Of a DNA stretch of 64,000 nucleotides, positions 7,822 to 64,000 are shown one piece after another. Position 1 is the stretch's first letter. Each line of letters starts with the position of its first letter. Under the pieces are notes generated by a model. The model was not told where the DNA came from. It worked only from the letters and a program-made list of their open reading frames with translations, and did no database searches. A program made the position numbers and the translations under genes. The stretch comes from Macrostomum hystrix (Eukaryota > Animalia > Platyhelminthes), in assembly GCA_950097015.1 (NCBI GenBank), contig CATNEN010000007.1:3720001-3784000 (forward strand). Direction: 5' to 3'.

Positions 7822-9045
7822 GAAAGCCGACCGTTGCATATTGAGAAGCATCGAGAAAAGATTGCAGATTTCATACCTCATGCGTAAATTAGCTCGCCGT
7901 GACTGCTATTTAACTCGCTTGAAATTTATAAACTTTTATACATCAAATGCTACTCGTGAGTAGTCCCAATAGTGACTATTTAGATTAACTCTTTACTCCT
8001 ACGCATGGGTATTGTATTTCCTTAGTTTTTCAATCTTATTCTTTCCAAATTCAGACATACGAGTATGGAAGGAATTTCCATATTTGATATGGAAATTAAT
8101 GACCAGACGGAGCAATTTATTCACTAAAAGGTATAATTAACAAAATAAGAAAATAGGAAATATTTCAAGCTTAATGTTACTTTAAGTAGGCAGGTACTGA
8201 AGTATTATATTATATCTTAAAGTATACATACAAATTTACCATTCCCGTTAGTTGAAGCACGCGCCCGTGTTGGCGAGTGAATTTTAAATAGCAGACTAGA
8301 GCTCTCCCTATCTTCAGAAAAGTTAAAACGCACTCAGGGGAGCGACTCAAGTGGCCGACACAACTTTCGTTTATAAATTTTTTTTAGCAAGAATTTTCTG
8401 GCTCAGCGTCCGGAGTTACGAGTAGAACAGTACTGACAGTGCTGGACTCATTCTCGTGGTCTCAATTAGCATTTTTCGAGTGCCTGTCATTCATATACCG
8501 ATGACCGAGTCGTTTCCTGCCAGTCATGAGTCTGAGACTGAGAGAACTGGCTGCTCACAACTGCCCGCCCGCTGTGCTCAAGTAATCTTGTCCGGCATTC
8601 CAGCATAGGAGAGATCGACTCCGGAAATTCGCAATGGGGATCGGTAGGAAAGAAGACGCCAATGCCAAATTAATCCCTACTCTGGCAGCGCGGAAGAGGA
8701 GCTGGGATAAGAGCCAGGAAGTGGCTCAGCCACTGACTGGGAACTGGGATTATTAATACAACTAATGCAGCAATAAGTGAATGCTGATGAATGCTTGAAT
8801 GCTGAGCGTGGATGCGCTTCTGATAGGACAGGCAAGATCGATCAGCCGAAAAAGAAATCTGACAATTAAAAAAAGAAGGATAGCGGAAAGAAACAGCCGC
8901 ACAGACAGCTGGCAGAGGAGCGTGGGTGGAGTGCTCTGCTATTGGCTGTCACCGCAGCCCCAGGTGCATAACAGTGCCGGGCAGAGGGCCGGGCTCGGTG
9001 CGCCTAAGACTCACACATTCTCGCTCTGCCCGTACAGCCTACCCG

Positions 9046-27100: not shown

Positions 27101-27381
27101 CGGAAGCTCAGATGGCCGTGGAGTGTTGGTGAGGCTGTCATCCACAGGGCGCGCAAGTTGCTGGCCAGGGAGAAGGTGAAGACGAGCAGCAGGAAGGCGG
27201 ACTTGGCCGCGCCGGCTTTGTCCAGTCTCGGGTAGGGCGGCAGATCTTTTGTGGCGTTGAGGGCCTCGTCGGCGACGAACTTCTGGGTAAGAGACGGTGG
27301 AAGGGGGTTGGTGGCAGAGCGGTTAACGCGTTTGCCTCTCGTGCCAAGATCCCTGAGCTCGATTCCGCGGTGAGGCCACAT
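24183..27381 (-). CDS. Class A GPCR of the GnRH/AKH/corazonin receptor superfamily (exons 27381-26803, 26437-~26188, 24727-24183)
   Basis: HLIVADLMVTGF (TM2), WILSQEFRGGDALCRLFKF (ECL1/TM3), STYVTMVIAFNR, MPQ|LLLFGVARGPWQRSFYQCV (ECL2), LTRARVSASRM...FVLLWLPYW (TM6), AVNPVIY (TM7). N-glycosylation sequons NRS and NAT in the N-terminus. Exon-2 donor uncertain: 26188 gives the required phase, while 26169 would need an extra exon. Confidence 0.88.
24857..25352. repeat. 15-bp minisatellite (cagtcattctcctct)n, intronic
   Basis: Direct reading; in the last intron of the minus-strand GPCR. Confidence 0.96.
26550..26605. repeat. Degenerate (AAAC)n microsatellite
   Basis: Direct reading. Confidence 0.75.
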
Positions 27382-37000: not shown

Positions 37001-40000
37001 TAGTAAGGACTGTAGTAAGGACTGTAGTCATGACTGTAGTAAGGACTGTAGTAAGGACTGTAGTAAGGACTGTAGTAAGGACTGTAGTAAGGACTGTAGT
37101 CATGACTGTAGTAAGGACTGTAGTCATGACTGTAGTAAGGACTGTTGTAAGGACTGTAGTCATGACTGTAGTAAGGACTGTAGTAAGGACTGTAGTCATG
37201 ACTGTAGTAAGGACTGTAGTAAGGACTGTAGTAATGACTGTAGTAAGGACTGTAGTAAGGACTGTAGTCATGACTGTAGTAAGGACTGTAGTAAGGACTG
37301 TAGTCATGACTGTAGTAAGGACTGTAGTAAGGACTGTAGTAAGGACTGTAGTAAGGACTGTAGTCATGACTGTAGTAAGGACTGTAGTAAGGACTGTAGT
37401 AAGGACTGTAGTAAGGACTGTAGTCATGACTGTAGTAAGGACTGTAGTCATGACTGTAGTAAGGACTGTTGTAAGGACTGTAGTCATGACTGTAGTAAGG
37501 ACTGTAGTAAGGACTGTAGTCATGACTGTAGTAAGGACTGTAGTAAGGACTGTAGTCATGACTGTAGTAAGGACTGTAGTCATGACTGTAGTAAGGACTG
37601 TAGTCATGACTGTAGTAAGGACTGTAGTAAGGACTGTAGTAAGGACTGTAGTCATGACTGTAGTAAGGACTGTTGTAAGGACTGTAGTAAGGACTGCAAT
37701 AATTACTGTAGTAAGCGAGAGACGAGCCAGTGTCAATTCAAGGACTACCAAAGTAAGGTATCTACTGTAGTCTTTGTGTCAATTCCATAGAATGATTTCA
37801 TTCTATAGATTATAAACATGGATTACTATATATAGCACAGTTTATAAATAGCATAGGTGCTATAGGGGATGTAGCCTTGAAGGCTGGGAGTTCGAATCCT
37901 GGCTCCATGTGAACATGTCCAAGTCCTTGCATTAAATCAGAGCTGGTCCTTTGCAAAATAGACACATAGTCTATGGCAATGTACTTTTCATTCTCCCTGC
38001 CATTTTTCTTTCCGCAAGTCTTTTTACTCTCAAGTGCCTTTATTTCAGCAATGCACTACGTATGCCTCCATCTGGGTTTACACTGCCTCAGTATCCATCT
38101 ACTCTAGTCACTCTAGTGGTATCAACAAGCTGTTTTAAGACACCGAACAGAACCCAAGGCATGTCAAGGTCCTAATGTCAAGGGGTGTTAGAGATAGTCC
38201 AGTTTTCCTTTGAATACCTTGTGTAAACTTCGTAGTGCGCAAAGAAGGCCATGCTGTGATAGTGCATGTGGCAGAGGTGCCACTCCCAGTGCTCCGTTTG
38301 TCGCAGCGGCAAGAAGTCCCGCGTGCCCTCGTTGGCAACAATGCTGGAGAACCTGAATAAATTGCGGCTGGCGAACGGCCAGTCTGCGCGTGGGACGAGA
38401 GCGGCTTTGTCTTGTAAAGTAATGTAAATGCCGAAATACTCTGCAAGTACTACTTATAGTCGACCAGTTGGCACTTATCACATTTATTGCTTGATATTCT
38501 ATTGTCTTCTAATGTTTTCATCAGCCCATATAACCTCCTTATTAACACTTGCTGTCAATCACCCAACTTCCCCCTCATCATAGATGTGAGCCACCCCCAC
38601 TCCGCCCCTCACCCTGGCTGTGAGCCACCCCATTCCCTTTCCTCCTAACCCTGGCTGTGTGCAACCCCACTCCCACTCCCTTCTCCCTCCCTTCCCACTT
38701 CCTTCCTCCCCACTCACCATGGCTGAGCGCCACCCCACTCCTATTTCCCACCCCCTGGCTGTGAGCCACCCCACTCCCTCCTCACCATGGCTGTGAGCCA
38801 CCCCATTCCCTCTCAACATGGCTGTGAGCCACCCCACTCCCTCTCACCATGTTTGTGCGCAACCCCACTCCCTCCCCGTATCCCCTCCCACCCACTCCCT
38901 TCCCCCAATCTGGCTGGACTCCCCACTCCTATTTCCCACCCGCGCTATTTCCATACTTTTCGCTGGTGGCCAGAAAGCTTACGCGGGTCGTTATTTTTCA
39001 GCTCGAAGGCGACCGGCGAGGCGCACTTTTCCTCCAGCGCGCAGGCCATGTAGTACATGGGAATCCTAGAGATATAGGCCGATGCCTGCAGCGCTTGGGC
39101 ATCTGGCACGAGATCCGGTAGGTCTGCAAGGGGATTTCATTCTCCAATAACCTGACAGAACAAGTATTTGACTCGTGCTTGATTTGACTTGATTTCCTAA
39201 TCATTAACCTGAGGTGCAGGTGACGCCCAGGGCGAGCTGGCTTGACTTGCAAGGCACTCCTTTATTGCTGCCATAGAGAGCACACTGCTCCAACCGAGTC
39301 TCATTGCCCAGACAGTTACCTAGCAACAAATTCTGACGGCTCGAATTCACCAGGCCTTCCAGAACCAGCTCGGAGATTGAGAACTGTGAGAATGTTGACA
39401 GAGAATTCGAAAATGGGTCTGCAACATTCTGTCGGTAGGTTAATAAAAGCATCTTTGAGTAGTCAACTCACCGAGTGCAGAAACCTGCCGTACTCGCCTG
39501 CGCCCAGCTGCCGGCAGATGACGTTGGCCTCGCGAAGTGTGACCGAGTCGATGCAGACTGCACCGGGTGAGCCGTTAGACACCTCGGCCAGGACAGCCAG
39601 AATGCTTCCGGGGCCGAATGGAGCTCCTCTGAGCTTGAACCTTGGCTGCGGGACAGTCAGAAAACGTTGCACACTATCTGAGCACTCTTTCAATCTGAAC
39701 ACTCTTTCACTCTGAGCACTCTTTCACTCTGAGCACTCTTTCAATCTGATCACTCTTTCAATCTGAACACTCTTTCAATCTGAGCACTCTTTCACTCTGA
39801 ACACTCTTTCACTCTGAGCACTCTTTCAATCTGAGCACTCTTTCACTCTGATCACTCTTTCAATCTGAGCACTCTTTCACTCTGATCACTCTTTCACTCT
39901 GATCACTCTTTCACTCTGAGCACTCTTTCAATCTGAACACTCTTTCAATCTGAGCACTCTTTCACTCTGAGCACTCTTTCACTCTGATCACTCTTTCACT

Positions 40001-43474: not shown

Positions 43475-46400
43475 ATGACACCCCTGCTCTGCCAGCTGAT
43501 CATTTTGCTAAATATTTTCGTCCTTTCCATCACCGTCGCCGCAACCACTCCAGTTGTTGGCGGCAACTTCGCGCCGTATTGGGCAGTTGAGGTGGCCGGC
43601 GGACCACCGGTTGCCATGGCAATCGCTAAACGGCGCGGATTTGAATTTCTGGGAGAGGTATGTAAGAGTGAGAAGCAGTTGATATTTTTTTCTAAAAAGC
43701 TGAGCTCGAAAGTCCTGATTCGTCAGGATTTGGCGACCCACTGGTTTCACAGAGGCCTCCTCAAATTCGAGCTCAAATTTGTAGATGGAGGCCTTGATCG
43801 TACATTGCGCACTTTCTGCTCAAGAGAAGTTTGACAACGGTGTACACAAGACTGGCGCTGAAATTCTCAAATTGTATGATACGATAACCATGATCCACCA
43901 ATTGGCGCCAAGTTTAAATTTTAGTCGCTGGAAAATATATTGAACAGAATTTCTTGTCTAAAGTTCATGGACCTCGATGTCGGAGACCTGTGACAGTTGC
44001 AGAAGCCAACATCATTGCCTAGCTGGCAAGTTTGAGTGGGTCACTGCTAAACTAAACTAAAACACTCACTGTCTCTGATTCACCAACACTCACTGTCGCT
44101 GATTCACCAACACTCACTGTCTCTGATTCACCAGCACTCACTGTCTCTGATTCACCAACACTCACTGTCTCTGATTCACCAGCACTCACTGTCTCTGATT
44201 CACCAACACTCACTGTCTCTGATTCACCAACACTCACTGTCGCTGATTCACCAACACTCACTGTCGCTGATTCACCAACACTCACTGTCTCTGATTCACC
44301 AGCACTCACTGTCTCTGATTCACCAACACTCACTGTCGCTGATTCACCAACACTCACTGTCTCTGATTCACCAGCACTCACTGTCTCTGATTCACCAACA
44401 CTCACTGTCTCTGATTCACCAACACTCACTGTCTCTGATTCACCAACACTCACTGTCTCTGATTCACCAGCACTCACTGTCTCTGATTCACCAACACTCA
44501 CTGTCTCTGATTCACCAGCACTCACTGTCTCTGATTCACCAACACTCACTGTCGCTGATTCACCAACACTCACTGTCTCTGATTCACCAACACTCACTGT
44601 CTCTGATTCACCAACACTCACTGTCCCTGATTCACCAGCACTCACTGTCTCTGATTCACCAACACTCACTGTCCTTAAGTCACCAACCCTCACTGTCTCT
44701 GATTCACCAACACTCACTGTCGCTGATTCACCAACACTCACTGTCTCTGATTCACCAACCCTCACTGTCTCTGATTCACCAACACTCACTGTCTCTGATT
44801 CACCAGCACTCACTGTCTCTGATTCACCAACACTCACTGTCTCTGATTCACCAACACTCACTGTCTCTGATTCACCAGCACTCACTGTCTCTGATTCACC
44901 AGCACTCACTGTCTCTGATTCACCAACACTCACTGTCTCTGATTCACCAACACTCACTGTCTCTGATTCACCAACACTCACTGTCTCTGATTCACCAACA
45001 CTCACTGTCTCTGATTCACCAGCACTCACTGTCTCTGATTCACCAACACTCACTGTCTCTGATTCACCAGCACTCACTGTCTCTGATTCACCAGCACTCA
45101 CTGTCTCTGATTCACCAACACTCACTGTCTCTGATTCACCAACACTCACTGTCTCTGATTCACCAGCACTCACTGTCTCTGATTCACCAGCACTCACTGT
45201 CTCTGATTCACCAACACTCACTGTCCTTAAGTCACCAACCCTCACTGTCTCTGATTCACCAACACTCACTGTCGCTGATTCACCAACACTCACTGTCTCT
45301 GATTCACCAACCCTCACTGTCTCTGATTCACCAACACTCACTGTCTCTGATTCACCAGCACTCACTGTCTCTGATTCACCAACACTCACTGTCTCTGATT
45401 CACCAACACTCACTGTCTCTGATTCACCAGCACTCACTGTCTCTGATTCACCAGCACTCACTGTCTCTGATTCACCAACACTCACTGTCTCTGATTCACC
45501 AGCACTCACTGTCTCTGATTCACCAACACTCACTGTCTCTGATTCACCAGCACTCACTGTCTCTGATTCACCAGCACTCACTGTCTCTGATTCACCAGCA
45601 CTCACTGTCTCTGATTCACTTGCTCAAATCTCTGAAGTAAAATTGATATGCAAAATAGGTGTAGTTAGTAATTAATTAGTAAAAATGTGGCGCACAGTCA
45701 TCCTTTTTAAGGGGGCCAATCTGTGGCTCGAACACTCAAGCTGGTTCGTTTTAGCACGGCTTTGTGTACGCGAGCTTGTAGCCAAGTTTTGGAAGAAGGC
45801 GTACAGCTCTGGCTGATAGTCTAGACCAGAAATTTTCGTCTGCTTTTAAAAATGTAAAAGTTAAATAAAGCAAGAAAGAAAGCTGTAGACGAACACAGCT
45901 GGCTGTGTTGCGGCAAAGTGCGGCCACACTACGCGATTGCAGATTAATTTGTTGAAATTCGGCAAAAAATATTTCCATGCGTAGATTGGGCTTCTATTTA
46001 TTAAAGTGATTGGGAAATTCTGCCTCTGAAGCTGAATAGTAGGTGAAGTGGAATATCACTTCAGCTTAAGCCATTCGCATGTCCCACACAAGCAGTTCCT
46101 GAACAATGGACACACATGGACACACGAATGGACACACATGGACACACGAATGGACACACATGGACACACGGCTTTCTGTGCTGAGGGCTACCTCATAAAG
46201 CTGTCACGAATTGCCTTGGCATTCGGATTACAGTTCCGTATAGGCATCTTTTTTGTTTCTGAAAAATGTATCCGACTTGTGTTACATATCTGTGTCACAT
46301 ACTTTCCGTGACTCGCCAACAGCACAAACACTCCGAATGGCCACTTGGGACCAGCGCTGATGCCCTTGAAGTTGGTGCAAGCTTCCAATGGCACGACCTT

Positions 46401-49400: not shown

Positions 49401-52400
49401 GGAGTCTGTGTTCAAGGGCGCAGGGGCCCGGCAGAGCTCTGATTCGTCCGTTTCCGCTTTTCCGGGGGCGGCGGGCGAGGGGCTTCGGACTCGAAGCTGA
49501 AGATCTACATTCGAATGAGACCTGCACTGATGTAGGACATGTCTGGGCAGCGGAGCATCCAGCTGTCCGACAGTCCTAGAATGGCCGTGAAACCGTCTCC
49601 ACCAGGTCTGGTGATGGCTTCATGAACCACGACACCGTTTGCTGGCAGATCCGGGTGGATTGCCAACAGCAGTTGGCAACAACAGCGGCGCAGTTCTCCG
49701 GCGTTGGTGATGGCGCAGCGAGCTGGGATCCAAACACGATGACGATGTGTCTGGGGGCGCTCGTCCTCCCTGTAGATAAACAGGTTGCCCATTTCCGTGC
49801 CCCAGTCGAAGGTTTTCAGCATCTCGAGGAGTTGCTGTCCGGACTGGTTGTCGGCAGGCTGGACAATGAGGGCTTGGTCCTGGATGTCGGTCTTCAGGAC
49901 GTGCAGCACAGTGCCGCACAGTGCCAGTTTGACCAGATGAGAGTCCAATCTGCGCCAAATCTGGTCGAGTTGCGCTGTCGAGAGGGGCGTCTCCTGGCCT
50001 CGGATAACCAAGGCCGGCTGCCTCTTTGCCATAGCAGCGTAAGTACGATTTGGCTTTGTGGTTTGGTCGGCGCCTCCCGCAACGGGCCCCCCAGCAGTCG
50101 TCGGAGTTTCCGGATGACTGTGAGAGGTTCCGCCGCGAGAGGAACCGGACGCCCCAGAGGCCTGGGCAGCACTTTTCCGCGCTTCCGGGTTTCCCGGACG
50201 ACGTGAGGAGTCCGCCTCCTTGTTGGGTGCCGGTTCCTCCGCGATGTTCGCAGAGTTGCCGGCCCCCTCCTCGGAGGCGGTGGTTGGCGCGGACTTCGCA
50301 GCCAACCGTCCTTCCTGTTTGCGCCGCCGGAATTCCTGGAAGCGGGCGAAGCTGCGGGCCTGCGTGGCAGGGGAGCGTTTGCTCTTTGATCCAGCCGCTC
50401 TGGTGTTTTCCTGAGTGGCGGAGGAGCAGGATGGGTTTTGGGCGCCGGTGGAACCGGTGTCGCCCTGGCGCTGGTCCTGAGGATCTGCGTCGCCGGCCGG
50501 GGTCAGCGTTTCAGCAGGGTCCTGGGACGTGCTGGAGCTAAAGTTGGACTCCATAGGTCGCTTGAATGACAGAAAATTTTAAATGAAAAATAAAAACCGT
50601 TAACGGCCGGATATACTTCCCGGACCTTTCAGCCCCTCAGCGCGGTGAGACCTTAGGCATAAGAGGGCACCTAGAGCAGTGCCAGGCCCGCAGACTGGCT
50701 GCGTACCCTGTTAAGGTCGAAGGGTGACACCTGTCCCTCAGAGCCGTAGCCAGAGGTACCTGATCACGCACAGGTGCACGAACGCTGCGGACTGGCCGCA
50801 TACCCTGTTAAGGTCAAAGGGTGACACCTTTCCCTCCAGCCAGGGCTAGAGGTACCCAGTTTGGCCAGAGGCCCTGGATGGGTCATCCAGCGCTGTTGCC
50901 CATTCTGTCCGGCTGCCCTAGGGTCAGCCTTGAACACTCGCGGGACGTGTACCCATGGGTCAGCTGACGGGACAGCGTGGAGGGATTCCTGCACCCGAAG
51001 GCACAGGGCTCCTTCCTGCCAAGCCTGCTCAAAAAGCGACTGCAGGTGTGAGGCATCGCAGACCTTAGCCCGTGGGCCTGGACTGACTCATACCTCACAG
51101 GCGTTGTGTCCCGCCGGTGCGAGCCACAACTTAGGCACATGCTACTGGATTCTTCGTCAAAAACTGTACCTAAAACTCGTCACTCGTTCTTCAGATTTTG
51201 CCGGGTATTTTTCATTTCAAATTGACTCGACGTGTGAAACGCTGCCAGCGGACTCAGCAGCCGTATCTGGAGCGACTGTTGCTGTCTGAATCGGCGGTGA
51301 GTTTATGGATTTCTGTGACTGCTTATTCCTGACAATTATTACTGTTCCCTTCCTGAATGCAACTTGCAGATTGCATTTCAGCCCTTGCCTTTAATTTAAT
51401 GAGGCTAATTTCAGTCCTTTAGTTCCAACTTAGCGGCTACGCAAGCTTTAGAACGGGCCCAAAATGTACATTTAGATTTTAAATCGGCAGGCAAAACTAA
51501 ACACCCACCCCACTCCATGACCCACTTTGGTGTGCCAATTGTCCACATATGTACACTGTGTATGTACACTGCGTATGTACATGAACTGGCTGCTGCTGTC
51601 CTTAGCTTCGTCATTTCTGACCCTTCCTAAGACCGAATTTTCTCAACTGGGCTGTTTGCGCAGTACCAAGGCCTAGCCAAGCCTTACCCAGCAAATTAAA
51701 ATTGGAGTCAAACTTGTACTTTTCTTATCGATTCCTGCAAAATACAAGCAGGAAATGAAGTCCCAAAGCCTGCTCCATTTCATCAATTCTTACACTTGCT
51801 TTCATGCTCTATTCGAAGTCTGCAAACAACTAAAATCGGCACAAATTCTTGGAAAAAAACAGAATTCATACCAGTTTAAGACCATCTGAAACACAAGTAG
51901 CGAAATTAATTCCCAGATTTTTAATGCAACATTCTATAGCCAAGCTAAATCCATCATCCATCTACGAACGAGTACAAAAACTAAACTCAGACTGCAGTCA
52001 AGGCCCAAGCTCAACAGAGCCTTATCTTATCGAAAAGTTGTTATATACTGTCATTTAAAAGGCATAATTAAATCAGATAATAGCACTGGATGCTGTCACT
52101 GGCATGAAAATACTACTCTGATACTTATCAAAAGCAGTTCTTTACAAATCATCGAGCTTCGAGAATGATAGTGCCAGCTGCTGCAGTCTCGCACCCGTTT
52201 CACAAGCAGGTGGTCTGGGCAGAACAGCAGCGAATTTATCGACGCTTCAAGCGCTCTGCATCTCCGTTGTTCATGAACGACGAGAAGTGGACCAAGATGT
52301 GGTACCTGGTGAGCGCCGAAGTTAGATAATTGTTTGCTAGCAGAGTGGATAAACTTGCTAGGGAGGTGGGGAAGCGATTAGTGGGTGGGGAAAAAGAGGA

Positions 52401-55400
52401 AGAGAGTAAGTAACGAGCGGGAGAGAGTGGGTAAGGAGCGGGAGAGAGTGGGAGAGTGTGGGAGAGAGAGGGTAAGGAGTGGGAGAGAGTGGGTAAGGAG
52501 CGCGAGAGAGTGGGAGAGAGTGGGTAAGGAGTGGGAGAGAGTGGGAGAGAGTGGGTAAGGAGCGGGAGAGAGTGGGAGAGAGTGGGTAAGGAGCGCGAGA
52601 GAGTGGGAGAGAGTGGGTAAGGAGTGGGAGAGAGCGGGAGAGAGTGGGTAAGGAGTGGGAGAGAGTGGGTAAGGAGTGGGAGAGAGTGGGTAAGGAGCGG
52701 GAGAGAGCGGGTAAGGAGCGCGAGAGAGTGGGAGAGAGAGGGTAAGGAGCGGGAGAGAGTGGGAGAGAGTGGGTAAGGAGCGGGAGAGAGTGGGAGAGAG
52801 TGGGTAAGGAGCGGGAGAGAGTGGGAGAGAGTGGGTAAGGAGCGGGAGAGAGTGGGAGAGAGTGGGTAAGGAGTGGGAGAGAGTGGGAGAGAGTGGGTAA
52901 GGAGCGGGAGAGAGTGGGAGAGAGTGGGTAAGGAGCGGGAGAGAGTGGGAGAGAGTGGGTAAGGAGCGGGAGAGAGCGGGAGAGAGTGGGTAAGGAGCGG
53001 GAGAGAGCGGGAGAGAGTGGGTAAAGAGCGGGAGAGAGCGGGAGAGAGCGGGAGAGAGTGGGAGAGAGTGGGTAAGAAGTGGGAGAGAGTGGGTAAGGAG
53101 CGGGAGAGAGTGGGAGAGAGTGGGTAAGAAGTGGCAGAGAGTGGGTAAGGAGCGGAAGAGAGCTGGAGAGAGTGGGAGAGAGTGGGTAAGAAGTGGGAGA
53201 GAGTGGGTAAGGAGCGGGAGAGAGCGGGAGAGAGTGGGAGAGAGTGGGTAAGGAGCGGGAGAGAGTGGGAGAGAGTGGGTAAGGAGTGGGAGAGAGTGGG
53301 AGAGAGTGGGTAAGGAGCGGGAGAGAGTGGGAGAGAGTGGGTAAGGAGCGGGAGAGAGCGGGAGAGAGTGGGTAAGGAGCGGGAGAGAGCGGGAGAGAGT
53401 GGGTAAAGAGCGGGAGAGAGCGGGAGAGAGCGGGAGAGAGTGGGAGAGAGTGGGTAAGAAGTGGGAGAGAGTGGGTAAGGAGCGGGAGAGAGTGGGAGAG
53501 AGTGGGTAAGAAGTGGCAGAGAGTGGGTAAGGAGCGGAAGAGAGCTGGAGAGAGTGGGAGAGAGTGGGTAAGAAGTGGGAGAGAGTGGGTAAGGAGCGGG
53601 AGAGAGTGGGAGAGAGTGGGTAAGAAGTGGGAGAGAGTGGGTAAGGAGCGGGTGAGAGCCCGCAAGCAACCGTGCCCCACCCGTCCCTCCAGCACGAGCC
53701 AGAGCTTGCGAGGCGGCGGCACCCAAGCGGCGTCCCGGCTCCCAGCATGAACATCGCCGGCGCCTGGCAGTTGGGCTACCACGGCCAGGGCGTGGTGGTC
53801 TGCGTCCTTGACGACGGCATCGAGAAGGAGCACCCGGACCTCAGAGAGAACTATGTGAGAGCATTAGTGACTCCCGGGTATAGGAGAAGCTTCTCAACAA
53901 TGCACAAGGCAGAGCTAGGCCTGTGGGTGAAGCCGCATAGCAATCAAATCACAGCAAACATGAAATGCTAGGTTGTCACGGTATGTCGTTCAGCAATAAA
54001 TATGGTAGGACTGACAAGAGATTTACCTAAAAAGAAAATGGCCCTGCATCAGCTGAGAAGGGATATTGCCTAGCAAGGCCTGTTAAGCATCAGAAACGGC
54101 TGCAGTTCCTGGACGCTGTCCTCCGTATTTGACCAGCCCTGCCCGCATGACTCGACAACGCCAGCTGCCATCCTTGACTGAACAGCCACCTCCAGCCCAC
54201 CCAGCTGTCGCCGCAGACTTCCTGTCCTGTGCGCCTCACGTCGTGCGGTGCGGCCACTTTTCTTAGAAAGCCCAACTTTACCGACGCTTTCAAGTGGGTT
54301 AAAAAGGAAAAACGTTTTGACGCCTTCGTGGTTGAAGCAGAGCTGCGTCCAGAGAGGAAATTGCGGTCCCGTGCCGCTTCTGTGTCTCGCCCTCCCTCTC
54401 CCCTTTCATTCTGGCACACAGTTGCAATGCGACGGACTGTTAAGCAGCATTCACACCTCTGCAGCAGGCCCAGCGCTGCTGTTAAGTGAGGCGAACAAGT
54501 CCGCCAGAGAGGCCACTGTTGACGTGACCGATTTTTCTGTTAGAGAAAGCTTTCCGTGCAATTTAGTGAGGCCGTCTGACATACTGCTGTACAGAGATTC
54601 TCACCTGGGCACTCAGACAAGCGAATCGGTTGCCTTCGCTACAATACTTTCCCCTACCTGCTTCTGAGGTTGTAAAGTATCGTGCTAAATTATAATTGCT
54701 ACCATTTTTATCTGCACCCATCTAGCCTGATCGAAAGATTCCCGAAATTGTTGCGCTTTCCTGCCTGCTTCAGCAGTCGTAAAGTTTTTGTGCTTGCTTA
54801 ATGTTGCGAATCGAAATACTAAGCCAGGTCGGCAGGTCAAGTCATCCATGATTTGATCACGGGAAATTGATTGAATGTTACTTTTGTAGGTACTACGTGG
54901 GTAACCCTGGTTTAAGAGATAGTTAATAACACACACACGGGCTTTTTAAAGTTTTAGTAGCTGGATAATAAAGTATACAGTAGCACGAAATGAGCACATT
55001 GCAGCCCACAAATTCCAGGATCCTGAAGCATCGTTTGACGCCAATAATAACGACCCGGATCCGTCATTTCGGCACACCGTCAGGGACGACAACAAGTTAG
55101 TTCAGGGACTGGGTTGATAGTATGAGTAATAATATATAAGCAGCATGGTATTGTTTAAGGCCAACCAAGAATGATCTACTAAGTATTCGGGTTGTAGCCT
55201 AGCGGTTAGGCCATCGGACTCACTATTTTAAGGTTGGATGTTCGATTCGCGACTCCATTTGAACAATTTGTGTCCTTCAGCAACTCTAGATTGCATTATT
55301 GCATCAGTTCACGCAGCTGTTGATTGGGTACCAGCATGAGCTGCGGTAATTGAGACTGGCTTTCGCACCCCTTGTCCATGGACTGAACAGCTGCACACAG

Positions 55401-57952
55401 CCTTCAGGCAGCTGCGGCTGTGCTGTCCGATTGGGGCAAATGTAAGAAGTTATTATAAAATTACGAGTATTGAGTACGTGTGCTCTTTGTAAATCTTGTA
55501 ATTGTCGTAGTCTACGACAACCACACAGCAGAATTAGCTATTCGTTGAGCTCGATGCTTAAAAACCTGTATAGACTACAAAAACTGCCAGGCCATCTACT
55601 TTCAGTAGAAATATGCGCACATTGAATTTCTTTGTGTTTTAGGCATGGAACTCGCTGCGCAGGTCAGATTGCAGCCCAGGCCAACAACTCCATCTGCATT
55701 CCGGGTGTGGCTTTCCGTTCCCGGATCGGAGGTACGATGATTCAGCTCTCCGCTTGCAGCTTTTCAAGAACATGCGGCTTCTTTGAATGGGATCTCAATG
55801 AACTGACGATCCCTTCCGTTCTCCAACAGCCATTCGCATGTTGGACGGCGACATCACTGACACCGTCGAGACTCTCTCCGTCGGCTACCGACCGCAGCAC
55901 ATTCACGTCTACTCCTCCAGTTGGGGACCGAATGACGACGGCGCCACCCTAGAAGGCCCGGGCAGCCTCACCCAGAAGGCCTTCAGGCTGGGCGTCACCC
56001 GGGGCAGGCGCGGCCTCGGCTCCGTGTTCGTCTGGGCTAGCGGCAACGGCGGCCGCGACGACAACTGCAACACCGATGGCTACACGAACAGCATCTACAC
56101 CCTGTCGGTGGGTTCTGTGTCGGAGTCGGGCTCGGTGCCCTGGTACAGCGAGTCCTGCTCATCCACACTGGCCGCTACCTACTCAAGGTGCGACAGAAAT
56201 AGAACCTTGCTTAACCCTGCCACAAACTTCTTGAGTGCTTGACTTACTTGACTTAGCTGCGGGCTGCATCTGCCAGAGCAGGTGCATTGGGAAGGCGGTG
56301 AAAACAGCTAGTTCTGCCCATTCTGACAGCCCCTGAAAACCGGACGATGCCTCCGAGCCGATGATGAAATCAAAGAGGGGCCCTCGTAAAGATCGTATAG
56401 CGGCATGGATAAAGTGCTCCGCGTTTTTCGTTGTCACACTTGCGAAAGGGACATAGCTCCACTGGCCACCTGGCCCTCCGAATATTTGTCCACCTTTCCT
56501 TGTGTTTGTACTGCATCCAGGGTCTCAATTTAGTGGAAAATTGCTCTGGCTGCTGTGGCAGTTCTAGCAAGCTATGACCCCAGCTCAGTGAGGAATATTT
56601 TCCCTTCCAAATTTCCTATTTAAACTGATCAATTTCCCTACTCGATCCTCCGTAGTGGAGACAGCGGACTTCAGGAGCGCTCCATGGTGACCACCGACCT
56701 GCACGGCCGCTGCACAGAGAACCACACCGGCACCAGCGCCAGCGCGCCCATCGCGGCTGGGATCGTGGCCCTGGCCCTGTCCGCCAATCCCGGTCTCGGC
56801 TGGCGCGACCTGCAACACCTGACTGTCCGCTCGGCTAATCCATCGGATTATCTGCGCACCACCTGGCGGACTAACGGCGTCGGTAGGCGGGTGTCGCACG
56901 AGTTCGGCTACGGCCTCATGGACGCTCTGGAGATGGTGCGCCAGGCTCGCCGCTGGCGCTCGGTGCCCCCGTTAAGAAGCTGCGACGCTGGCAGCCAGCC
57001 GGGACTGTCGGTGACCATAGACGATGGCTACGAGCGAACGTTTCGCCTGACGACGGACGCCTGCGCCGGCCTGGGACCGGACCAGGAGGTGGCCTTCGCT
57101 GAGCACGTCCAAGCCAGGGTGGAGCTGACAGCCACGCGGCGGGGTGGCGTGCAGCTGTGGCTGCACTCTCCACTGGGCACCGTCAGCCAGCTGCTCAGCC
57201 GCAGGCCCAAGGATAAGGTGAGTAGGGAGCGATGGCAATATGGGATGTACGGGGCTTTTGAATAATCTGTGGCCTAACTTGAGCTGATCTATATAAATAA
57301 ATAAAACGAAAATAAATGGCAGGAGATCATTTGTTTCCCCTGGGCTGAGATTCGAACTCTTCACCTCTCAACTAGGAGGCCGAAGCTCCGCCACTGGGCG
57401 AGAACGTCAATAGTCTTGGTTTGAGAATTGATGCAATTGATGGAGACAGCAGACACAAGCAGGCTGGCCAATGAAACCTGAAGCCCAATTCATAACCTAT
57501 ATTTTATTGCTATTGCAGGGAAACGGTGGCTTTCACCTGTGGCCCTTCATGACAGTGCACAACTGGGGCGAACCGCCGAAAGGCACCTGGCAGCTGGTGG
57601 TTCGCTGCGACGGATGCACAGGTGAGGAACGCACAATGCACTTCCAGCTTGCCTGGCCACCATCTTTGCTGGCGACTTACCTAAATTACTCGCGTGCCCC
57701 GCAGCCACTCTGCACAGCTGGTATTTGTTAATTCACGGCACCGGCGACCTGCCAGCCGACCAGGTGATGCCGGTGGTCCCCAGGTCGCAGCCAGGGCAGC
57801 CACCGGTTACAGGCCAGGACAGGCCGACCACCCAGCTGCCTGGAGACGATGCGGCCAAGTTTGGCGGCAGAATCCTCGGTGGCGCTTTGAAAGGGCCGAC
57901 GCTGCAAGCCGCTGCGGTACTGCTGCTTCTGCTGTTGCTTCTAAAGCTATGA
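43475..57952 (+). CDS. Kexin/furin-family proprotein convertase (S8 prodomain, catalytic domain, P domain; ~660 aa). Exons 43475-43657, 51195-51296, 52210-52308, 53693-53854, 55019-55095, 55643-55731, 55830-56187, 56656-57217, 57519-57621, 57705-57952
   Basis: All nine GT-AG junctions are phase-consistent. Signal peptide; prodomain YWAVEV...[13 protein letters not shown]; catalytic Asp (VLDDG), His (KHGTRCAG) and Ser (HTGTSASAP); oxyanion Asn (WASGNGG, so not PC2); P domain (EHVQ...[11 protein letters not shown]...GTWQL). Orthology to a specific PCSK is not resolved. Confidence 0.96.
44060..45618. repeat. 24-bp minisatellite (caccaacactcactgtctctgatt)n, ~65 copies, in convertase intron 1
   Basis: Direct reading; source of the 517-aa SVGESETV artefact ORF. 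Confidence 0.98.
48313..49020 (-). pseudogene. Apurinic-like endonuclease domain of retrotransposon ORF2 (frameshifted at its 3' end)
   Basis: EEP-fold motifs QE, GDxN, D and SDH are all visible in the translation. Confidence 0.9.
49505..50554 (-). pseudogene. Retrotransposon ORF1 (gag-like); probably extended further to ~49070 before frameshifts
   Basis: 349-aa ORF upstream of APE inside the TSD-bounded element, with a low-complexity N-terminus. An acidic tail [16 protein letters not shown] occurs in another frame near 49130-49075. Confidence 0.7.
52410..53652. repeat. Purine-rich compound tandem repeat (gggagagagt / gggtaaggagc units) in convertase intron 3
   Basis: Direct reading; ends ~40 nt before acceptor 53692. 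Confidence 0.96.
55189..55440 (+). mobile_element. tRNA-derived SINE-like element with a CORE-like segment, in convertase intron 5
   Basis: A-box-like tagcctagcggttagg (55194) and B-box gttcgattc (55240), then tgtgtccttcagcaa, which resembles the CORE-SINE TGTGACCTTGGGCAAG. Body shared with 28404-28660. Confidence 0.65.
56238..56580 (-). mobile_element. Degenerate 3' fragment of a LINE related to the 47565-51130 element, in convertase intron 7
   Basis: Same tail (ttgacttagctgc on plus). Translated remnants KHKERWTN and CPF...AEHFI correspond to KHKDRWIN and CPFC...AEHFI of the larger copy. Confidence 0.7.
57336..57400 (-). mobile_element. tRNA-derived SINE head in convertase intron 8
   Basis: Minus strand gcccagtggcggagc...gagttcgaatctc has A- and B-box-like motifs with tRNA-like spacing; no complete acceptor stem seen. 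Confidence 0.5.
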
Positions 57953-58438
57953 CTTGGCTGCTGCTACTGATTTTCTACATCGTTTGCTAACACTAAAACA
58001 GGGATCAGACATTCTTGCTTCGTCGTACTCAATCCTTCTACGAAAAATACCTCAAATTCGCATTGCTGCAGAACAGCTTGGTCTTTGTTCTTGACGAATA
58101 TGTTTGAGTGCATTGTTCCAATACCTCAAACGCGACTGCCGTTGAAGTGGGAAATTTCTTTGAAAATTGCAAAAACTTTTTCTATTAGTATCTCGTTACA
58201 CTCGCATGTTTCATTGTTGACATTAATTCGACAGCCGACACCGTCCTGCCGGTAAAGAAATCGATATTGCATGTGATAATCTCCATTGCTTAATAAAAGG
58301 CGTAACATACCTCTGCGGCCAAGATCTGCTACTATGGCTTTCAATAAACAGAGCACAGAATAAAAATCATTACGTTCATATGACTGCTTGCAGCCAAAAG
58401 CCAAATAACTCACAGAAAACTAACTATAGCTCGTTATA

Positions 58439-59126
58439 CATTTACCGCAGCGTGTTTGCCGTATTGAAGCCAGCCTAGTGCTCATCGCTGATTGGCTAGG
58501 ATCATCATTTACCGCAGCGTGTTTGCCGTATTGAAGCCAGCCTAGTGCTCATCGCTGATTGGCTAGGATCATCATTTACCGCAGCGTGTTTGCCGTATTG
58601 AAGCCAGCCTAGTGCTCATCGCTGATTGGCTAGGATCATCATTTACCGCAGCGTGTTTGCCGTATTGAAGCCAGCCTAGTGCTCATCGCTGATTGGCTAG
58701 GATCATCATTTACCGCAGCGTGTTTGCCGTATTGAAGCCAGCCTAGTGCTCATCGCTGATTGGCTAGGATCATCATTTACCGCAGCGTGTTTGCCGTATT
58801 GAGCCCAGCCTAGTGCTCATCGCTGATTGGCTAGGATCATCATTTACCGCAGCGTGTTTGCCGTATTGAAGCCAGCCTAGTGCTCATCGCTGATTGGCTA
58901 GGATCATCATTTACCGCAGCGTGTTTGCCGTATTGAGCCCAGCCTAGTGCTCATCGCTGATTGGCTAGGATCATCATTTACCGCAGCGTGTTTGCCGTAT
59001 TGAGCCCAGCCTAGTGCTCATCGCTGATTGGCTAGGATCATCATTTACCGCAGCGTGTTTGCCGTATTGAGCCCAGCCTAGTGCTCATCGCTGATTGGCT
59101 AGGATCATCATTTACCGCAGCGTGTT
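58439..59126. repeat. 67-bp tandem repeat, ~10.3 copies, between the convergent convertase and ARIH genes
   Basis: Unit catttaccgcagcgtgtttgccgtattga(ag/gc)ccagcctagtgctcatcgctgattggctaggatcat; period 67 measured. Confidence 0.98.
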
Positions 59127-60014
59127 AGCTGTTTTGAACCCAGCCTTGTCATATATCGATCGAAAGTCATCCCAAAAGGCTGAATTATTCGTTTCAAAGA
59201 ATTAGAAAATTCGCTGGTTAAATCGAAGAGAGAGTTTTCTATGTATATTTTCATATGAAAATGAAAGCTTTCAATGCCATTTTAGCAAGCAATCAAATAG
59301 TTTAGGAGTCGCATAAGTGTTTGCGCCTTTGTAGAGCGGCACCCTTTCAATGACAGACAATGGTAGTGTTTTGCGAAAAAATTGAAAGCAGTGTTTTCGG
59401 AGCAATTTCACAAAGAACAACAATGAACACACCTCATACGCGTTGGTGGCTGCAATAAGCTAAAGAAACTGAATAAGGTTTGCAGGAAATTTCAAATACT
59501 CACTTGCCTTTTCCCATGGTGTCTAGATTCTGGCGAATCAAAATGTTCTGATCTTCGCGCTAAAAATTTTCCCATTTGAAAGTCGATGTGGAAAATGTGA
59601 AAACTCGGTGTTTGAGATCTCCCCCCCCACCGGGAGGACCCAGTTTAGTCAGGACAGGCAAGGAAAAATCAAAAGGTTTTTTGGAAGAGACTAGGCCAGG
59701 CACTTGGGATCGCTGTTCTGCAGTTTCCATGGTGACAAATAAGCAGGTATAAATTTTACCAGACTTGCGACAGCTAGAAGACAGCGAAGCAGATGCTGAC
59801 TAAATAAATGAATAAATAGAAATAAATAAACCAATAAATAACTGACTGCAAACAGGACTGAATGAGTTGCCCACCCACAGCTATTAAAGAAAGTATACAC
59901 AGTTTGCGAACAGTTGTGCTGAGCGGCAGTAATACCCATTTTGCAAATAACAACAGCACCTCTGAGTTCAAATTGAGTCCAGTCAGCTCTGTCTGAGCAC
60001 AGATTTCGGCTCCG

Positions 60015-62983
60015 TCAGGGATGCGCGCCGGTCATGTCGAAGGTCCACCAGTCGTCTTGGTAGCCTTCGTACACGTGCTGGAGTAGGGCGGCGGCCCGGT
60101 TGGTGCAGTAGCGGTAGCGGTCCTGCACAGACTGCTTGAGCCGCTGCAGGTTGGCCAGGTCCAGCTCCCGCTCCAGCACTTCGCTCAGCGCCTCGGTGGT
60201 CAGCTGCAGATTGCGCTGATTGTCCTCCAGGATTCTCTGCTGGTTGCTGGGCTGCAGGTAGTAGGCGAAGACGTACGTGTACATTAGCACTCGGCGGCAT
60301 TTGCACAGCGCGTCAACAGCGTCCCTGAGGAAGCGGCACTCCACCCAGGACAGCCCGGCCTGCTGAATCTCCGTCATCTTGGCGCTGATAATGCCGATGA
60401 GGCGCGATTCCAGCTCCATGGAGCGGCGATGGTTCATGTACAGGTCGTAATAGTGCAGGTAGCGGACCAGGTAGTCGCGGGAGACGGACTGGGCCAGTCG
60501 AAGTCGCTCGGCCCGGTCCTTGTCGAAGCGGTTGCAGTTGTACCACTGGTTGCCATGCGGTTGCCATTCGCCCATGCACACCCAGCAGAACTCGTAACGG
60601 CAGCTGGCGTTGCGGCAAATCATGTGATTGCAGCCGCCGTCCTTCTCGATGGTGGCGTGGCACTTCGGGCAGGGCTGCCAACAGGGCGATGGGCAGGGCA
60701 GTGAGTTGACAAGATAATTCGATTTAAATTGCCGTGTTAACATCTCACATCAGAGCAACATCAGATGTCAACAGGAAAGGGATTATCACAGTTAGCGGGC
60801 CTGAACATTCAGGAGAAGAGCTGAACATTCATGAGAAGAACTGAAATTTCAGGATAAGCATGACTGAACATTCAGGAGGTGCGGGCGAACACGCAATCAA
60901 GTTGGCCCCTCACCTTGGTGTGCACCAGAAACCACTGAGTATTCATGGACTCGCCCTCGTTCTTGTGCAGCCATTTGCGCAGCATCTCACAGCTGATTGG
61001 CTCGTGCCAGTCGTTGCCACAGGAAAAGCAGAAAGACTTGCCGCAGCGGCAGGTGACGCGGCAGACCAGGCCGCCGGTGTCGTCCAAGAGGCTGACAACC
61101 AGCTCGCAGTCCAAGCCCGGGCAGGGGGCCAGGCGGCGGGTGTCGTAGACATAGGACTTGAGTATGGAGCGCCGGTACTGGCTGCGCAGCCGGTCAGTGA
61201 GGAGGTGCTGATCGACCAGGAAGTCGTCGGCCTGAGCCAGGCAGTCATGCGCCGGGCACTGGAATGCATCGAACTGGCCGTTGGCGCTCATCTTCTCCTC
61301 CAGGTAGGCGGTCCAGCAGGGCGAGCAGAACCGGTGACCGCAGCCGGCCCCACTGAGGCTGCTGGACTCGGTGAAGCAGATCTCGCACAATGTCTCGCTT
61401 GAGCACTGAGACTGTAGCTGCTGCTGCTGCTGCGGTATGTGGTACGAGGCTAGAAACTCGTCTGGATCAGATTCGTAATAGCTGCAAAAGAATGGAATTG
61501 CATATCGATGCAAAATGTCACTGACAACGCTCTAGATAAGCAAGGGAAGAGGATAAGGAAGCGGGAATGAGAAGATCTGGTAGAAGGAGAGAAGATAAGG
61601 CAGGTGAGAAGATAATTCAGGGGAAAAGATAAGGCAGGGGAGAAGATAAGGCAGGGGAGAAGATAAGGCAGGGGAGAAGAGAATGCAGGGGAGAAGATAA
61701 GGCAGGGGAGAAGATAAGGCAGGGGAGAAGAGAATGCAGGGGAAAAGATAAATAAGAAGATAAGGGGAAAATAAGATAAGATAATAAGATAATAAGATAA
61801 GATAAGGGGAGAAGATAAGGCAGGGGAGAAGAGAATGCAGGGGAAAAGATAAGGCAGGGAAGAAGAGAATGCAGGGGAGAAGATAAGGCAGGGGAGAAGA
61901 TAAGGCAGGGGAGAAGATAAGGCAGGGGAGAAGATAATTCAGGGGAGAAGATAAGGCAGGGGAGAAGAGAATGCAGGGGAAAAGATAAATAAGAAGATAA
62001 GGGGAAAATAAGATAAGATAAGGGGAGAAGAGAATGCAGGGGAAAAGATAAGGCAGGGGAGAAGATAAGGCAGGGGAGAAGAGAATGCAGGGGAAAAGAT
62101 AAGGCAGGGGAGAAGAGAATGCAGGGGAGAAGATAATGCAGGAGAGAAGATAAGGAAGGGGAGAAGGAAAGGTAGGGGAGAAGATAAGGTAGGGGAGAAG
62201 ATAAGGCAGGGGAGAAGAGAATGCAGGGGAGAAGAGAATGCAGGGGAGAAGATAAGGTAGGGGAGAAGGAAAGGTAGGGGAGAAAATAAGGCAGGGGAGA
62301 AGGAAAGGTAGGGGAGAAAATAAGGCAGGGGAGAAGGAAAGGTAGGGGAGAAAATAAGGCAGGGGAGAAGGAAAGGTAGGGGAGAAAATAAGGCAGGGGA
62401 GAAGAAAATGCAGGGGAGAAGAGAATGCAGGAGAGAAGATAAGGCAGGGGAGAAGATAAGGAAGGGGAGAAGAGAAAAAAGGGGAGAAGAGAAGGCTGGG
62501 GAAGGAAAGGTAGCGGAGAAGATAAGGAAGGGGAGAAGAGGAAGGGGAGAAGGAAAGGCAGGGGGAATAGGCAAGAAAATGGGTTTCCGCGCACCGGTCC
62601 AACAGTCGGTCCTTGTCCCACCGGAAGGCCCTTAGCAGCAGGCGAATGTACTGCCTCGGCAGGTGCAGAACTTCAGCAGCGCTGTCAATGACGCGCTGCA
62701 TGGAGTCCCAGAGTTCGTCAGGTGTGAGCACAGTGTAATAATCGCTGCGCCCGGAGTCCGTGCGAATCTGCTGGCCGATGTGATGGTGCTGCTGCACAGG
62801 CAGCTGCTGCTGCACATCCTGCAGCACCATAGCGGCCGATCTGCCGCTGTTGCAGCTATTGTTTCTGTGCACCAGAGACTGCCGGCTCTGCTTTGCGGCC
62901 AGAGGTTGCTCAGCGGGGGACTCTTGGCTGTGTCTCCTGCGCCGGCCACCGCTGCCACCGGCTCTGGCCATAGACGATAGCAT
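60015..62983 (-). CDS. ARIH1: Ariadne-family RBR E3 ubiquitin ligase (exons 62983-62595, 61481-60914, 60674-60015)
   Basis: UBA-like segment ([28 protein letters not shown]), RING1 (CEIC...CGHRFCSPC...CPAHDC), IBR (CPGLDC...[21 protein letters not shown]), RING2 with catalytic Cys ([19 protein letters not shown]...FCWVC) and Ariadne domain ([12 protein letters not shown]...[11 protein letters not shown]). Both junctions are phase-consistent. ARIH1 versus another ari paralog is not certain. Confidence 0.93.
61590..62575. repeat. Purine-rich ~20-bp tandem repeat (aaggcaggggagaagata-like) filling ARIH intron 1
   Basis: Direct reading; begins ~20 nt from the donor at 62594. Confidence 0.95.
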
Positions 62984-63299: not shown

Positions 63300-64000
63300 G
63301 AATGGAAGGAGAAAAGAGGGAGAAGAGAAGGGAAGGGAAGAAAGAGAAGGGGAATAAGGGAAGAGGAGAGGAGGGAAGGGGAAAGAAGGGAAGGGGAAGA
63401 AAGGAAAAGGGTGTGAGGAGGGAAGGGGAGGAAGGGAAGGTGAATAAAGGGAAGGGAGAAAGGGGAAGGGAAAAGAAGAGAAAGGGAAGAGGAGAGGAGG
63501 GAAGGGAAAGGAAGAGAAAGGGAAGGGGAGAGGAGGGAAGGGGAAAGAAGGGAAGGGAAAGAAAGGGAAGGGAAAGGAAAAGAAAGGGGAGAGGAGGGAA
63601 GGGAAAGGAAGAGAAAGGGAAGGGGAGAGGAGGGAAGGGGAAAGAAGGGAAGGGAAAGAAAGGGAAGGGAAAGGAAAAGAAAGGGGAGAGGAGGGAAGGG
63701 AAAGGAAGAGAAAGGGAAGAGGAGGGAAGGGAAAGGAAAAGAAAGGGGAGAGGAGGGAAGGGAAAGGAAAAGAAAGGGAAGAGGAGGGAAGGGAAAGGAA
63801 AAGAAAGGGAAGAGGAGGGAAGGGAAAGGAAAAGAAAGGGAAGAGGAGGGAAGGGAAAGGAAAAGAAAGGGGAGAGGAGGGAAGGGAAAGGAAAAGAAAG
63901 GGGAGAGGAGGGAAGGGAAAGGAAAAGAAAGGGAAGAGGAGGGAAGGGAAAGGAAGAGAAAGGGAAGGGGAGAGGAGGGAAGGGAAAGGAAAAGAAAGGG
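63300..64000. repeat. Polypurine (G/A) tandem repeat running off the end of the window
   Basis: Direct reading (gagggaagggaaaggaaaagaaaggg-like units). Confidence 0.95.

Follow-up and report, generated by a model that had tools for sequence, protein, structure and literature searches.

Within a 64,000-nucleotide stretch of the Macrostomum hystrix genome (contig CATNEN010000007.1, positions 3,720,001 to 3,784,000 of the forward strand; hereafter, the window), a proprotein convertase gene occupies approximately 43.5–58.4 kb on the + strand and is flanked by a lysyl oxidase (LOX) gene and an Ariadne-type ubiquitin ligase gene (Table 1). The locus itself is an ordinary, well-formed gene. Our interest lies in its last coding exon, 57705–57952 (+), in which the protein ends at a short hydrophobic segment resembling the signal for addition of a glycosylphosphatidylinositol (GPI) anchor.

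Structure and expression of the convertase gene

The encoded protein displays the features of kexin/furin-type convertases (peptidase S8B). The catalytic Asp, His, oxyanion-hole Asn and Ser are intact and follow one another in the subtilase order on successive exons, and a P/Homo B domain lies directly after the catalytic domain; at the other end of the protein are a putative signal peptide and a prodomain with a multibasic autocleavage site. Four exons match Pfam Peptidase_S8, and P_proprotein is matched by 56656–57217 and 57519–57621. Every intron separating the seven 3' exons (53693–57952) is of the GT..AG type, and the joined frame is open to the stop at 57952. Database searches with the gene model were made exon by exon, the 187-residue exon 56656–57217 serving as the query for the family search and as input for the tree.

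The 5' part of the model is less complete. Residues 45–78 of the Macrostomum lignano protein P0152 match 43559–43660 (tblastn), and the hydrophobic N-terminus encoded by the first coding exon (43475–43657) was judged by eye to be a putative signal peptide of ∼23 residues (..ITVAA/TTP). The real start of the exon ending at 52311 lies a few tens of bases upstream of 52165. Since the donor of exon 1 (43657) is in phase 0 and faces phase-1 acceptors near the next recognised exon (52139–52187), a mismatch, at least one small exon is missing from the model between 43657 and 52311. A short exon for ∼7–10 prodomain residues probably lies in the 8.5-kb intron that follows exon 1.

The terminal exon follows an AG acceptor at 57703–57704 and starts in phase 1, with two bases that finish an Ala codon; 81 full codons (57707–57949) and a TGA stop (57950–57952) complete it. 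The linker, or stalk, that it encodes after the last strand of the P domain contains eight Pro, six Gly, five Asp and five Gln residues, and its first 12 residues are conserved in one of the paralogues described below (C1) and in M. lignano. G-G-A is the sole candidate omega site in the exon under the small-residue rule (PMC2571997, PMC10491789). The 14-residue tail (AAAV-L8-KL) has a mean Kyte-Doolittle value of 2.85 over the last 14 residues, the hydrophobic run being 12–16 residues long. Only two residues (K-L) follow the hydrophobic core and a cytosolic domain is absent. After the P domain the protein contains no Cys-rich sequence, no transmembrane (TM) segment of ∼20 or more residues and no cytosolic tail with sorting motifs, and the features that define the furin/PC5B/PC7 type are lacking. 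When only the terminal exon (81 residues) was used in a word search, which covered proteins of 45–142 residues only, 68 candidates came up, none of them significant.

An earlier note, made from the sequence of the window alone, had described this exon, and on re-reading of the sequence its coordinates, translation and hydrophobic protein end turned out to be exact. We also find, as it had reported, a G-G-A triplet ∼24 residues from the end followed by a polar spacer and a terminal hydrophobic stretch, as well as poly(A) signals at ∼58292–58365. Its description of the linker holds for the length of ∼45 residues and for the richness in Pro, Gln and Gly; Thr residues are fewer than it had implied.

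Table 1. Coordinates of the convertase gene, the parts of its terminal exon and the neighbouring genes, as positions in the window.
Feature	Position	Strand	Basis and remarks
First coding exon: Met, signal peptide, start of S8 prodomain	43475..43657	+	Open reading frame (ORF); tblastn; GTATGT donor at 43658
Prodomain end, autocleavage site R-R-F-K-R/S, start of mature enzyme (..WYL)	52165..52311	+	Weak Pfam S8_pro-domain; tblastn; donor GTGAGC at 52312
Catalytic-domain exon with active-site Asp (DDGIE)	53693..53854	+	Pfam Peptidase_S8; AG/GT sites; RNA joint
Small catalytic-domain exon (DPEASFD..)	55019..55095	+	Revealed by RNA joints alone; frame check; tblastn
Exon with active-site His (HGTRCAG)	55643..55731	+	Pfam; RNA joints; frame check
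Catalytic-domain exon with oxyanion-hole Asn (WASGNGG)	55830..56187	+	Pfam Peptidase_S8 E 4.7e-13; RNA joints; frame check
Exon with active-site Ser (HTGTSASAP) and first half of P/Homo B domain	56656..57217	+	Pfam Peptidase_S8, P_proprotein; RNA joints
Second P-domain exon	57519..57621	+	Pfam P_proprotein E 2e-6; RNA joints on both sides
Last strand of P domain, start of terminal exon	57705..57742	+	Ends WYLLIHGT; aligns with P-domain end in relatives
Linker (stalk), 45 residues, Pro/Gly/Asp/Gln-rich	57743..57877	+	Composition; no Pfam family
G-G-A triplet, candidate omega/omega+1/omega+2	57878..57886	+	Rule-based scan; 24 residues from C-terminus
Polar flexible spacer LKGPTLQ, 7 residues	57887..57907	+	Sequence
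Terminal hydrophobic segment AAAV-L8, then K-L, then TGA	57908..57952	+	Sequence; stop seen in RNA contigs
Unspliced 3' untranslated region (UTR), AATAAA at 58292, 58343 and 58359	57953..58406	+	RNA contigs; sequence
Lysyl oxidase gene	34065-39118	-	One exon matches Pfam Lysyl_oxidase (E 1.4e-29)
Ariadne-type RBR E3 ubiquitin ligase gene (RING, IBR, Ariadne domains)	60015-61513, on to ~63000	-	Convergent with convertase

The 3' half of the gene was compared, over 53680–58438 (4,759 letters), to contigs from four public sequencing runs of one study. These runs are not recorded as RNA, yet their contigs are spliced; they show presence and joints only, at a depth of 2–5, and contigs drop rare variants. 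Spliced contigs from the four runs confirm six GT..AG introns that match the exon borders. The joint 53854 to 55019 is found in three runs, joints 55095 to 55643 and 56185 to 56654 are seen in contigs, the joint 57215/17 to 57517/19 is found in three runs, and the joint 57618/21 to 57702/05, which confirms the acceptor at 57705, in two. One contig of 489 nucleotides runs with zero mismatches through 57181–57215, 57517–57618 and 57702–58053, and thereby through the stop into the UTR. The TGA stop is crossed without mismatch by contigs from three runs. Further contigs tile 57902–58406, with contig ends at 58374–58406, just past the three AATAAA signals. The terminal exon is therefore a genuine, expressed and canonically spliced last coding exon.

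The earlier note had proposed asking whether transcripts splice past this stop; among the RNA contigs none do, and the stop is real in transcripts. Over the compared interval no joint leaves the terminal exon and no contig extends past 58438, and in the four runs the exon 57519–57621 is joined to nothing other than 57705. Downstream alternative exons were found in the window neither in the ORF lists, nor by tblastn with tail-bearing relatives, nor among the RNA joints, and there is no room for exons encoding a Cys-rich region, a TM segment and a tail, because a minisatellite and the convergent Ariadne gene fill 58.4–63 kb. All this speaks against an isoform that would be spliced from the P-domain exons to a distant exon with a longer TM segment and a cytosolic tail, and so does the absence of a cytosolic tail from all flatworm orthologues in our set. 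We regard such an isoform as very unlikely, even though many C-terminal isoforms of both types occur in mollusc, Daphnia and insect relatives and two variants, one long and one short, are known for C. elegans KPC-1; with a depth of just 2–5, contigs only and a single study, the data are compatible with rare isoforms.

Family placement and the C-termini of relatives

In order to place the gene, the 187-residue exon was used in a HMMER scan, which returned 7,153 matches. The best full-length ones were to proteins of M. lignano (63%), Schistosoma, Spirometra, Paragonimus and nematodes and to a tardigrade 'furin-like protease kpc-1'. In a word search, the M. lignano protein retrieved flatworm proteins named 'furin' or 'Furin-like protease 1', proteins from nematodes and numerous 'furin-like protease kpc-1/Fur1' sequences from molluscs, nemerteans and arthropods. 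The protein library consisted of representatives, with sequences collapsed at 50% identity. The host genome (220 Mb) contains eight convertase loci, two of which are close paralogues of the window gene (C1, 64%; C38, 58%).

In a maximum-likelihood tree of the exon, the window gene groups with C1, M. lignano and C38 (support 97/96) within a flatworm clade (99/96), which falls inside a weakly supported protostome Fur1/KPC-1 group (80/67). That group excludes the PC1/PC2-like genes as well as furin, PCSK5 and PCSK6 of vertebrates. The sequence tree assigns the window gene to the flatworm part of the protostome clade of Fur1/KPC-1 furin-like proteases.

Two M. lignano entries called for caution. 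P0152/P0003 was considered as the orthologue of the window gene and rejected, being the orthologue of the C1 paralogue (85% versus 61%), an identity that marks the host and M. lignano as closely related. P0004 (UniRef A0A1I8I1N8, 1360 residues) was discarded as evidence for a long tail, as the model is a fusion: a KPC-1-type convertase, truncated directly ahead of its hydrophobic tail, is joined to a downstream protein resembling a G-protein-coupled receptor (GPCR), probably through a prediction artefact. Elsewhere in the M. hystrix genome, two further convertase genes consist of long uninterrupted frames, C2:2007441-2009381 (+) and C39:10360566-10361999 (-) (loci L014 and L012), of 647 and at least 478 residues, respectively. 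Both group with vertebrate PC2 (100/100) and have polar tails at the end. They are intronless in this region, in contrast to the intron-rich KPC-1-type genes.

The earlier note had suggested looking for relatives that keep a terminal hydrophobic tail, and it is kept in both paralogues and in all flatworm and nematode orthologues examined. The C1 paralogue ends in ..ASGALGSCQSPSRT followed by a 12-residue hydrophobic run and RLRGLC, and the C38 paralogue in ..NNAGAS followed by 18 hydrophobic residues and RLR; both thus have a small-residue cluster, 12–18 hydrophobic residues and not more than six residues thereafter. All ten parasitic-flatworm and all seven nematode orthologues in the tree stop at or near a hydrophobic segment of 9–25 residues, and when rows are counted, the terminal type of C-terminus is found in 14/14 for flatworms and 7/7 for nematodes. 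The C-terminus in which a hydrophobic segment ends the protein, as in KPC-1, is thus common to the window gene, its paralogues and these orthologues; the layout is conserved across two paralogues and two phyla while the tail sequence drifts.

Drosophila Fur1 and the mollusc and nemertean kpc-1 isoforms belong to the same family and are the nearest non-flatworm relatives (49–54% identity over the query exon). Their main isoforms differ in possessing a TM segment of ∼24–28 residues (crude measure) and 50–200 cytosolic residues, an organisation found in mollusc, nemertean, brachiopod, bryozoan and arthropod relatives, some alternative isoforms of which (e.g., Gigantopelta X2) end at the hydrophobic segment. 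The median length of the hydrophobic segment is 15 residues in the terminal type (n=54) versus 21.5 in tail-bearing TM segments (n=104; Mann-Whitney p = 0.0016), in a deduplicated set, by a crude measure and uncorrected for phylogeny. On the tree the terminal type calls for one change of state in flatworms and a second in nematodes, so that the tail-less forms of the two phyla may have arisen in parallel; none of 500 label shuffles was as clustered.

Because both paralogues and all flatworm and nematode orthologues examined share the ending, the terminal hydrophobic end of the window protein is not due to chance. This bears on the idea that the segment provides no stable anchor, being the CTG-rich, low-complexity end of a secreted enzyme, or that the enzyme is rapidly shed by cleavage of the stalk. 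The Leu run is indeed encoded by CTG, CTT and TTG codons in CTG-rich sequence that extends past the stop, the genome is rich in simple repeats and the stalk contains basic residues. However, the architecture is kept with unrelated sequence in two paralogues and two phyla, and C. elegans KPC-1 no longer functions once the segment is lost; we consider the absence of a stable anchor highly improbable. Taken together, the convertase is very probably tethered to the membrane without a cytosolic tail.

Mode of membrane anchoring

The nearest characterised counterpart is C. elegans KPC-1 (F11A6.1), which belongs to the same protostome furin-like clade in the tree. Like the window gene, it encodes a signal peptide, a prodomain, an S8 domain, a P domain, a short stalk and a terminal hydrophobic segment of ∼14 residues, with no Cys-rich and no cytosolic domain (PMC4811766, PMC10546877). 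Identity to the nearest Caenorhabditis row is ∼50% in the catalytic/P-domain exon, and the tail sequences are unrelated. KPC-1 also has genetics behind it, in the patterning of PVD dendrites via DMA-1/MNR-1, whereas the flatworm gene is known here from its sequence and transcripts. Dong et al. (PMC4811766) assigned the protein a TM domain at the C-terminus and noted that a cytosolic domain is lacking, and the same domain scheme was given by Salzberg et al. 2014. Ramirez-Suarez et al. 2023 (PMC10546877) located the putative TM segment at S675–S688 (14 residues) and found it to be required for function: its deletion abolishes rescue, the TM segment of PAT-3 restores it, and KPC-1 carrying a C-terminal sfGFP fusion is functional and found on dendritic membranes.

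The terminal exon of the flatworm gene invites another interpretation. GPI signals have been described as consisting of four regions (PMC2571997, PMC10491789), and each of them is present in this precursor, which also has a putative N-terminal signal peptide: a linker without structure, small amino acids at the omega and omega+2 positions, then a spacer and finally a hydrophobic tail that extends to the C-terminus. The hydrophobic run falls short of what is typical for a TM segment of the plasma membrane, segments of the terminal type being shorter than the TM segments of tail-bearing relatives, and the layout is conserved where the sequence is not. The sequence passes the corresponding rule check, which is of low specificity, with G-G-A at -24, no Pro at omega+1, the spacer LKGPTLQ and the upstream linker. 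The host genome also encodes PIG-T and GAA1, two subunits of the GPI transamidase. There is, furthermore, a precedent for such a re-reading: the C-terminal segment of the calcium-channel alpha2-delta protein, once annotated as a single TM segment, was predicted to be a GPI signal in the paper describing PredGPI (PMC2571997). That protein is unrelated to convertases and serves as a precedent of annotation only.

In the proposed mechanism, the stalk and the C-terminal anchoring signal without a cytosolic domain would hold the active ectodomain at secretory, endosomal and surface membranes, on their lumenal or extracellular side, and sorting by cytosolic motifs, as in mammalian furin, would then not be open to the enzyme. 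The transamidase would cleave at G-G-A, remove the spacer together with the Ala/Val/Leu tail and attach the lipid, and the two paralogues and the flatworm and nematode orthologues would probably be processed likewise.

Several observations weigh against GPI anchoring. The omega-site rule passes 20 of 26 relatives and discriminates little in Gly/Ser/Ala-rich linkers; the count of omega sites across relatives was accordingly set aside as evidence, since it is compatible with GPI anchoring and not discriminating. The L8 core is very hydrophobic, its best 8-mer (Kyte-Doolittle 3.85) being the highest among 26 tails scanned, and efficient GPI addition is said to need a marginally hydrophobic signal. 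Natural GPI signals span a wide range of hydrophobicity (table in PMC9520029). A basic residue stands directly after the core in all three paralogues (KL in the window gene, with K at -2, RLRGLC in C1 and RLR in C38), and in the M. lignano orthologue of C1 the core is followed by 8–11 polar residues. On sequence grounds, this basic or polar stretch resembles the positive-inside flank expected for a stop-transfer anchor. Finally, a TM anchor is sufficient for KPC-1, as a heterologous TM segment rescues and the C-terminal sfGFP fusion works.

These points are also what makes an uncleaved short TM segment a plausible alternative, which we hold to be somewhat less probable than not. The Ala/Val/Leu segment would then be a stop-transfer sequence and the convertase a type I protein with a two-residue K-L cytosolic stub, and a TM segment of this length would favour membranes of the endoplasmic reticulum, Golgi and endosomes. 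Such an anchor would agree with the published description of KPC-1, with the basic residues that follow the core in several nematodes as well (..LLLRL) and with the true TM anchors used by related protostome genes. However, the run of 12–16 residues is short compared to the median of 21.5 in tail-bearing relatives, in the orthologues of parasitic flatworms the segment is not followed by a basic residue, and a hydrophobic segment at the very end of a secretory protein is the classical mark of a GPI precursor, alpha2-delta being a case in which such a segment was mis-annotated as TM. Moreover, the C. elegans experiments show that a TM segment is sufficient, not that the native tail is retained.

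Weighing both sides, we consider GPI attachment, as predicted from the rules, to be the most likely mode of anchoring of the window convertase, with a confidence that we place midway. The extension of this prediction, namely, that the 'TM without cytosolic domain' of the KPC-1 type is really a GPI signal, including in C. elegans KPC-1 and in the furins of schistosomes, tapeworms and flukes, is put forward more tentatively.

Comparison with other systems helps to delimit the proposal. Mammalian furin, PC5B and PC7 share with the window gene the kexin-type catalytic and P domains and the attachment to membranes. Furin and PC5B have a Cys-rich region, and all three combine a full-length TM segment with a cytosolic tail that bears sorting motifs. 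The window gene has none of these, and vertebrate furin, PCSK5 and PCSK6 branch outside its clade. That a subtilase can work with a GPI anchor is shown by Toxoplasma TgSUB1, an S8 protease that is GPI-anchored at the cell surface, where it trims surface proteins (PMC10470614); it differs in being of the subtilisin type (S8A), not kexin-type, with no P domain, and is unrelated by descent at this level. The earlier note knew of no GPI-anchored convertase, and our literature search agrees with it: in the library searched, no GPI-anchored kexin-type convertase was found, nor any paper linking KPC-1 (F11A6.1) or another kexin-type convertase with a GPI anchor. Its view of the protein as a convertase with a GPI-like end in place of a Cys-rich region, a long TM segment and a cytosolic sorting tail is borne out by sequence and RNA. 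The claim of a new system is not, because the gene belongs to the Fur1/KPC-1 clade and the same tail-less C-terminal anchor has been published for C. elegans KPC-1, where it is read as TM (PMC4811766); the architecture was therefore already known. The earlier reading was thus partly right, in that the window gene appears to encode a tail-less, membrane-tethered convertase of the KPC-1 type with a GPI-like signal.

Genomic neighbourhood and significance

The LOX gene lies head-to-head with the convertase, ∼4 kb upstream, and the genome has just one LOX locus besides it. The partnership of the two products that the earlier note had thought possible finds no support: a distance of 16 Mb separates the other LOX locus from the C38 paralogue and the surroundings of C1 contain none, so that neither paralogue has a LOX neighbour, and adjacency alone is no support. 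Further upstream, exons of Rhodopsin-family GPCRs (Pfam 7tm_1) at 8926–9897 (+), 24183–24788 (-) and 26728–27381 (-) come from two or more genes. Within the first long intron of the convertase is an ATG-initiated ORF of 349 residues, 49505–50554 (-), with a Ser/Gly/Ala/Gln-rich N-terminal half, an ordinary-looking C-terminal half and no Pfam family. This ORF could represent a nested gene or belong to a mobile element.

The window is rich in minisatellites, which are found at 44061–45619, 52401–53659, 58439–59146, 61585–62564 and 63356–64000 and at many more positions upstream. Their units include a 24-mer (x65), 10-, 21- and 31-mers (x40–120), a 67-mer (x10.6) and a 17-mer (x58). The 67-mer array occupies 58439–59146, directly downstream of the convertase UTR, and one intron of the Ariadne gene holds a long 17-mer array. 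Several of the arrays lie inside introns of the convertase and Ariadne genes, and long spurious ORFs arise from them on both strands. In addition, a dispersed repeat of ∼180 bp at 55230–55410, in a convertase intron, has 558 first-look candidates in its own genome, its copies being 77–81% identical and spread over many contigs. The repeat is covered by RNA contigs at a summed depth of 350–890, versus 2–5 for the exons, with many loose ends; a search of this highly covered intron stretch against Rfam returned no family.

The remaining interest of the convertase lies in the family-wide hypothesis that the 'TM' of KPC-1 is a GPI signal. The locus lends this hypothesis comparative weight, as three paralogues in one free-living flatworm and all flatworm and nematode orthologues seen keep the layout. 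In mammalian furin the cytosolic tail steers the enzyme between the trans-Golgi network, endosomes and the cell surface. A convertase without cytosolic residues must therefore be positioned by some other means. If the hypothesis is true, the furin homologues of flatworms and nematodes would be the first lipid-anchored kexin-family convertases, and sorting by the anchor (via rafts, apical or dendritic delivery and, possibly, phospholipase release) would take the place of cytosolic motifs. A GPI-anchored enzyme would reside in the outer leaflet, be sorted with other GPI proteins and be sheddable by phospholipases. This would change the view of how KPC-1 acts on DMA-1/MNR-1 in worm dendrites and would also matter for furin-type processing on the surfaces of parasitic flatworms and nematodes.

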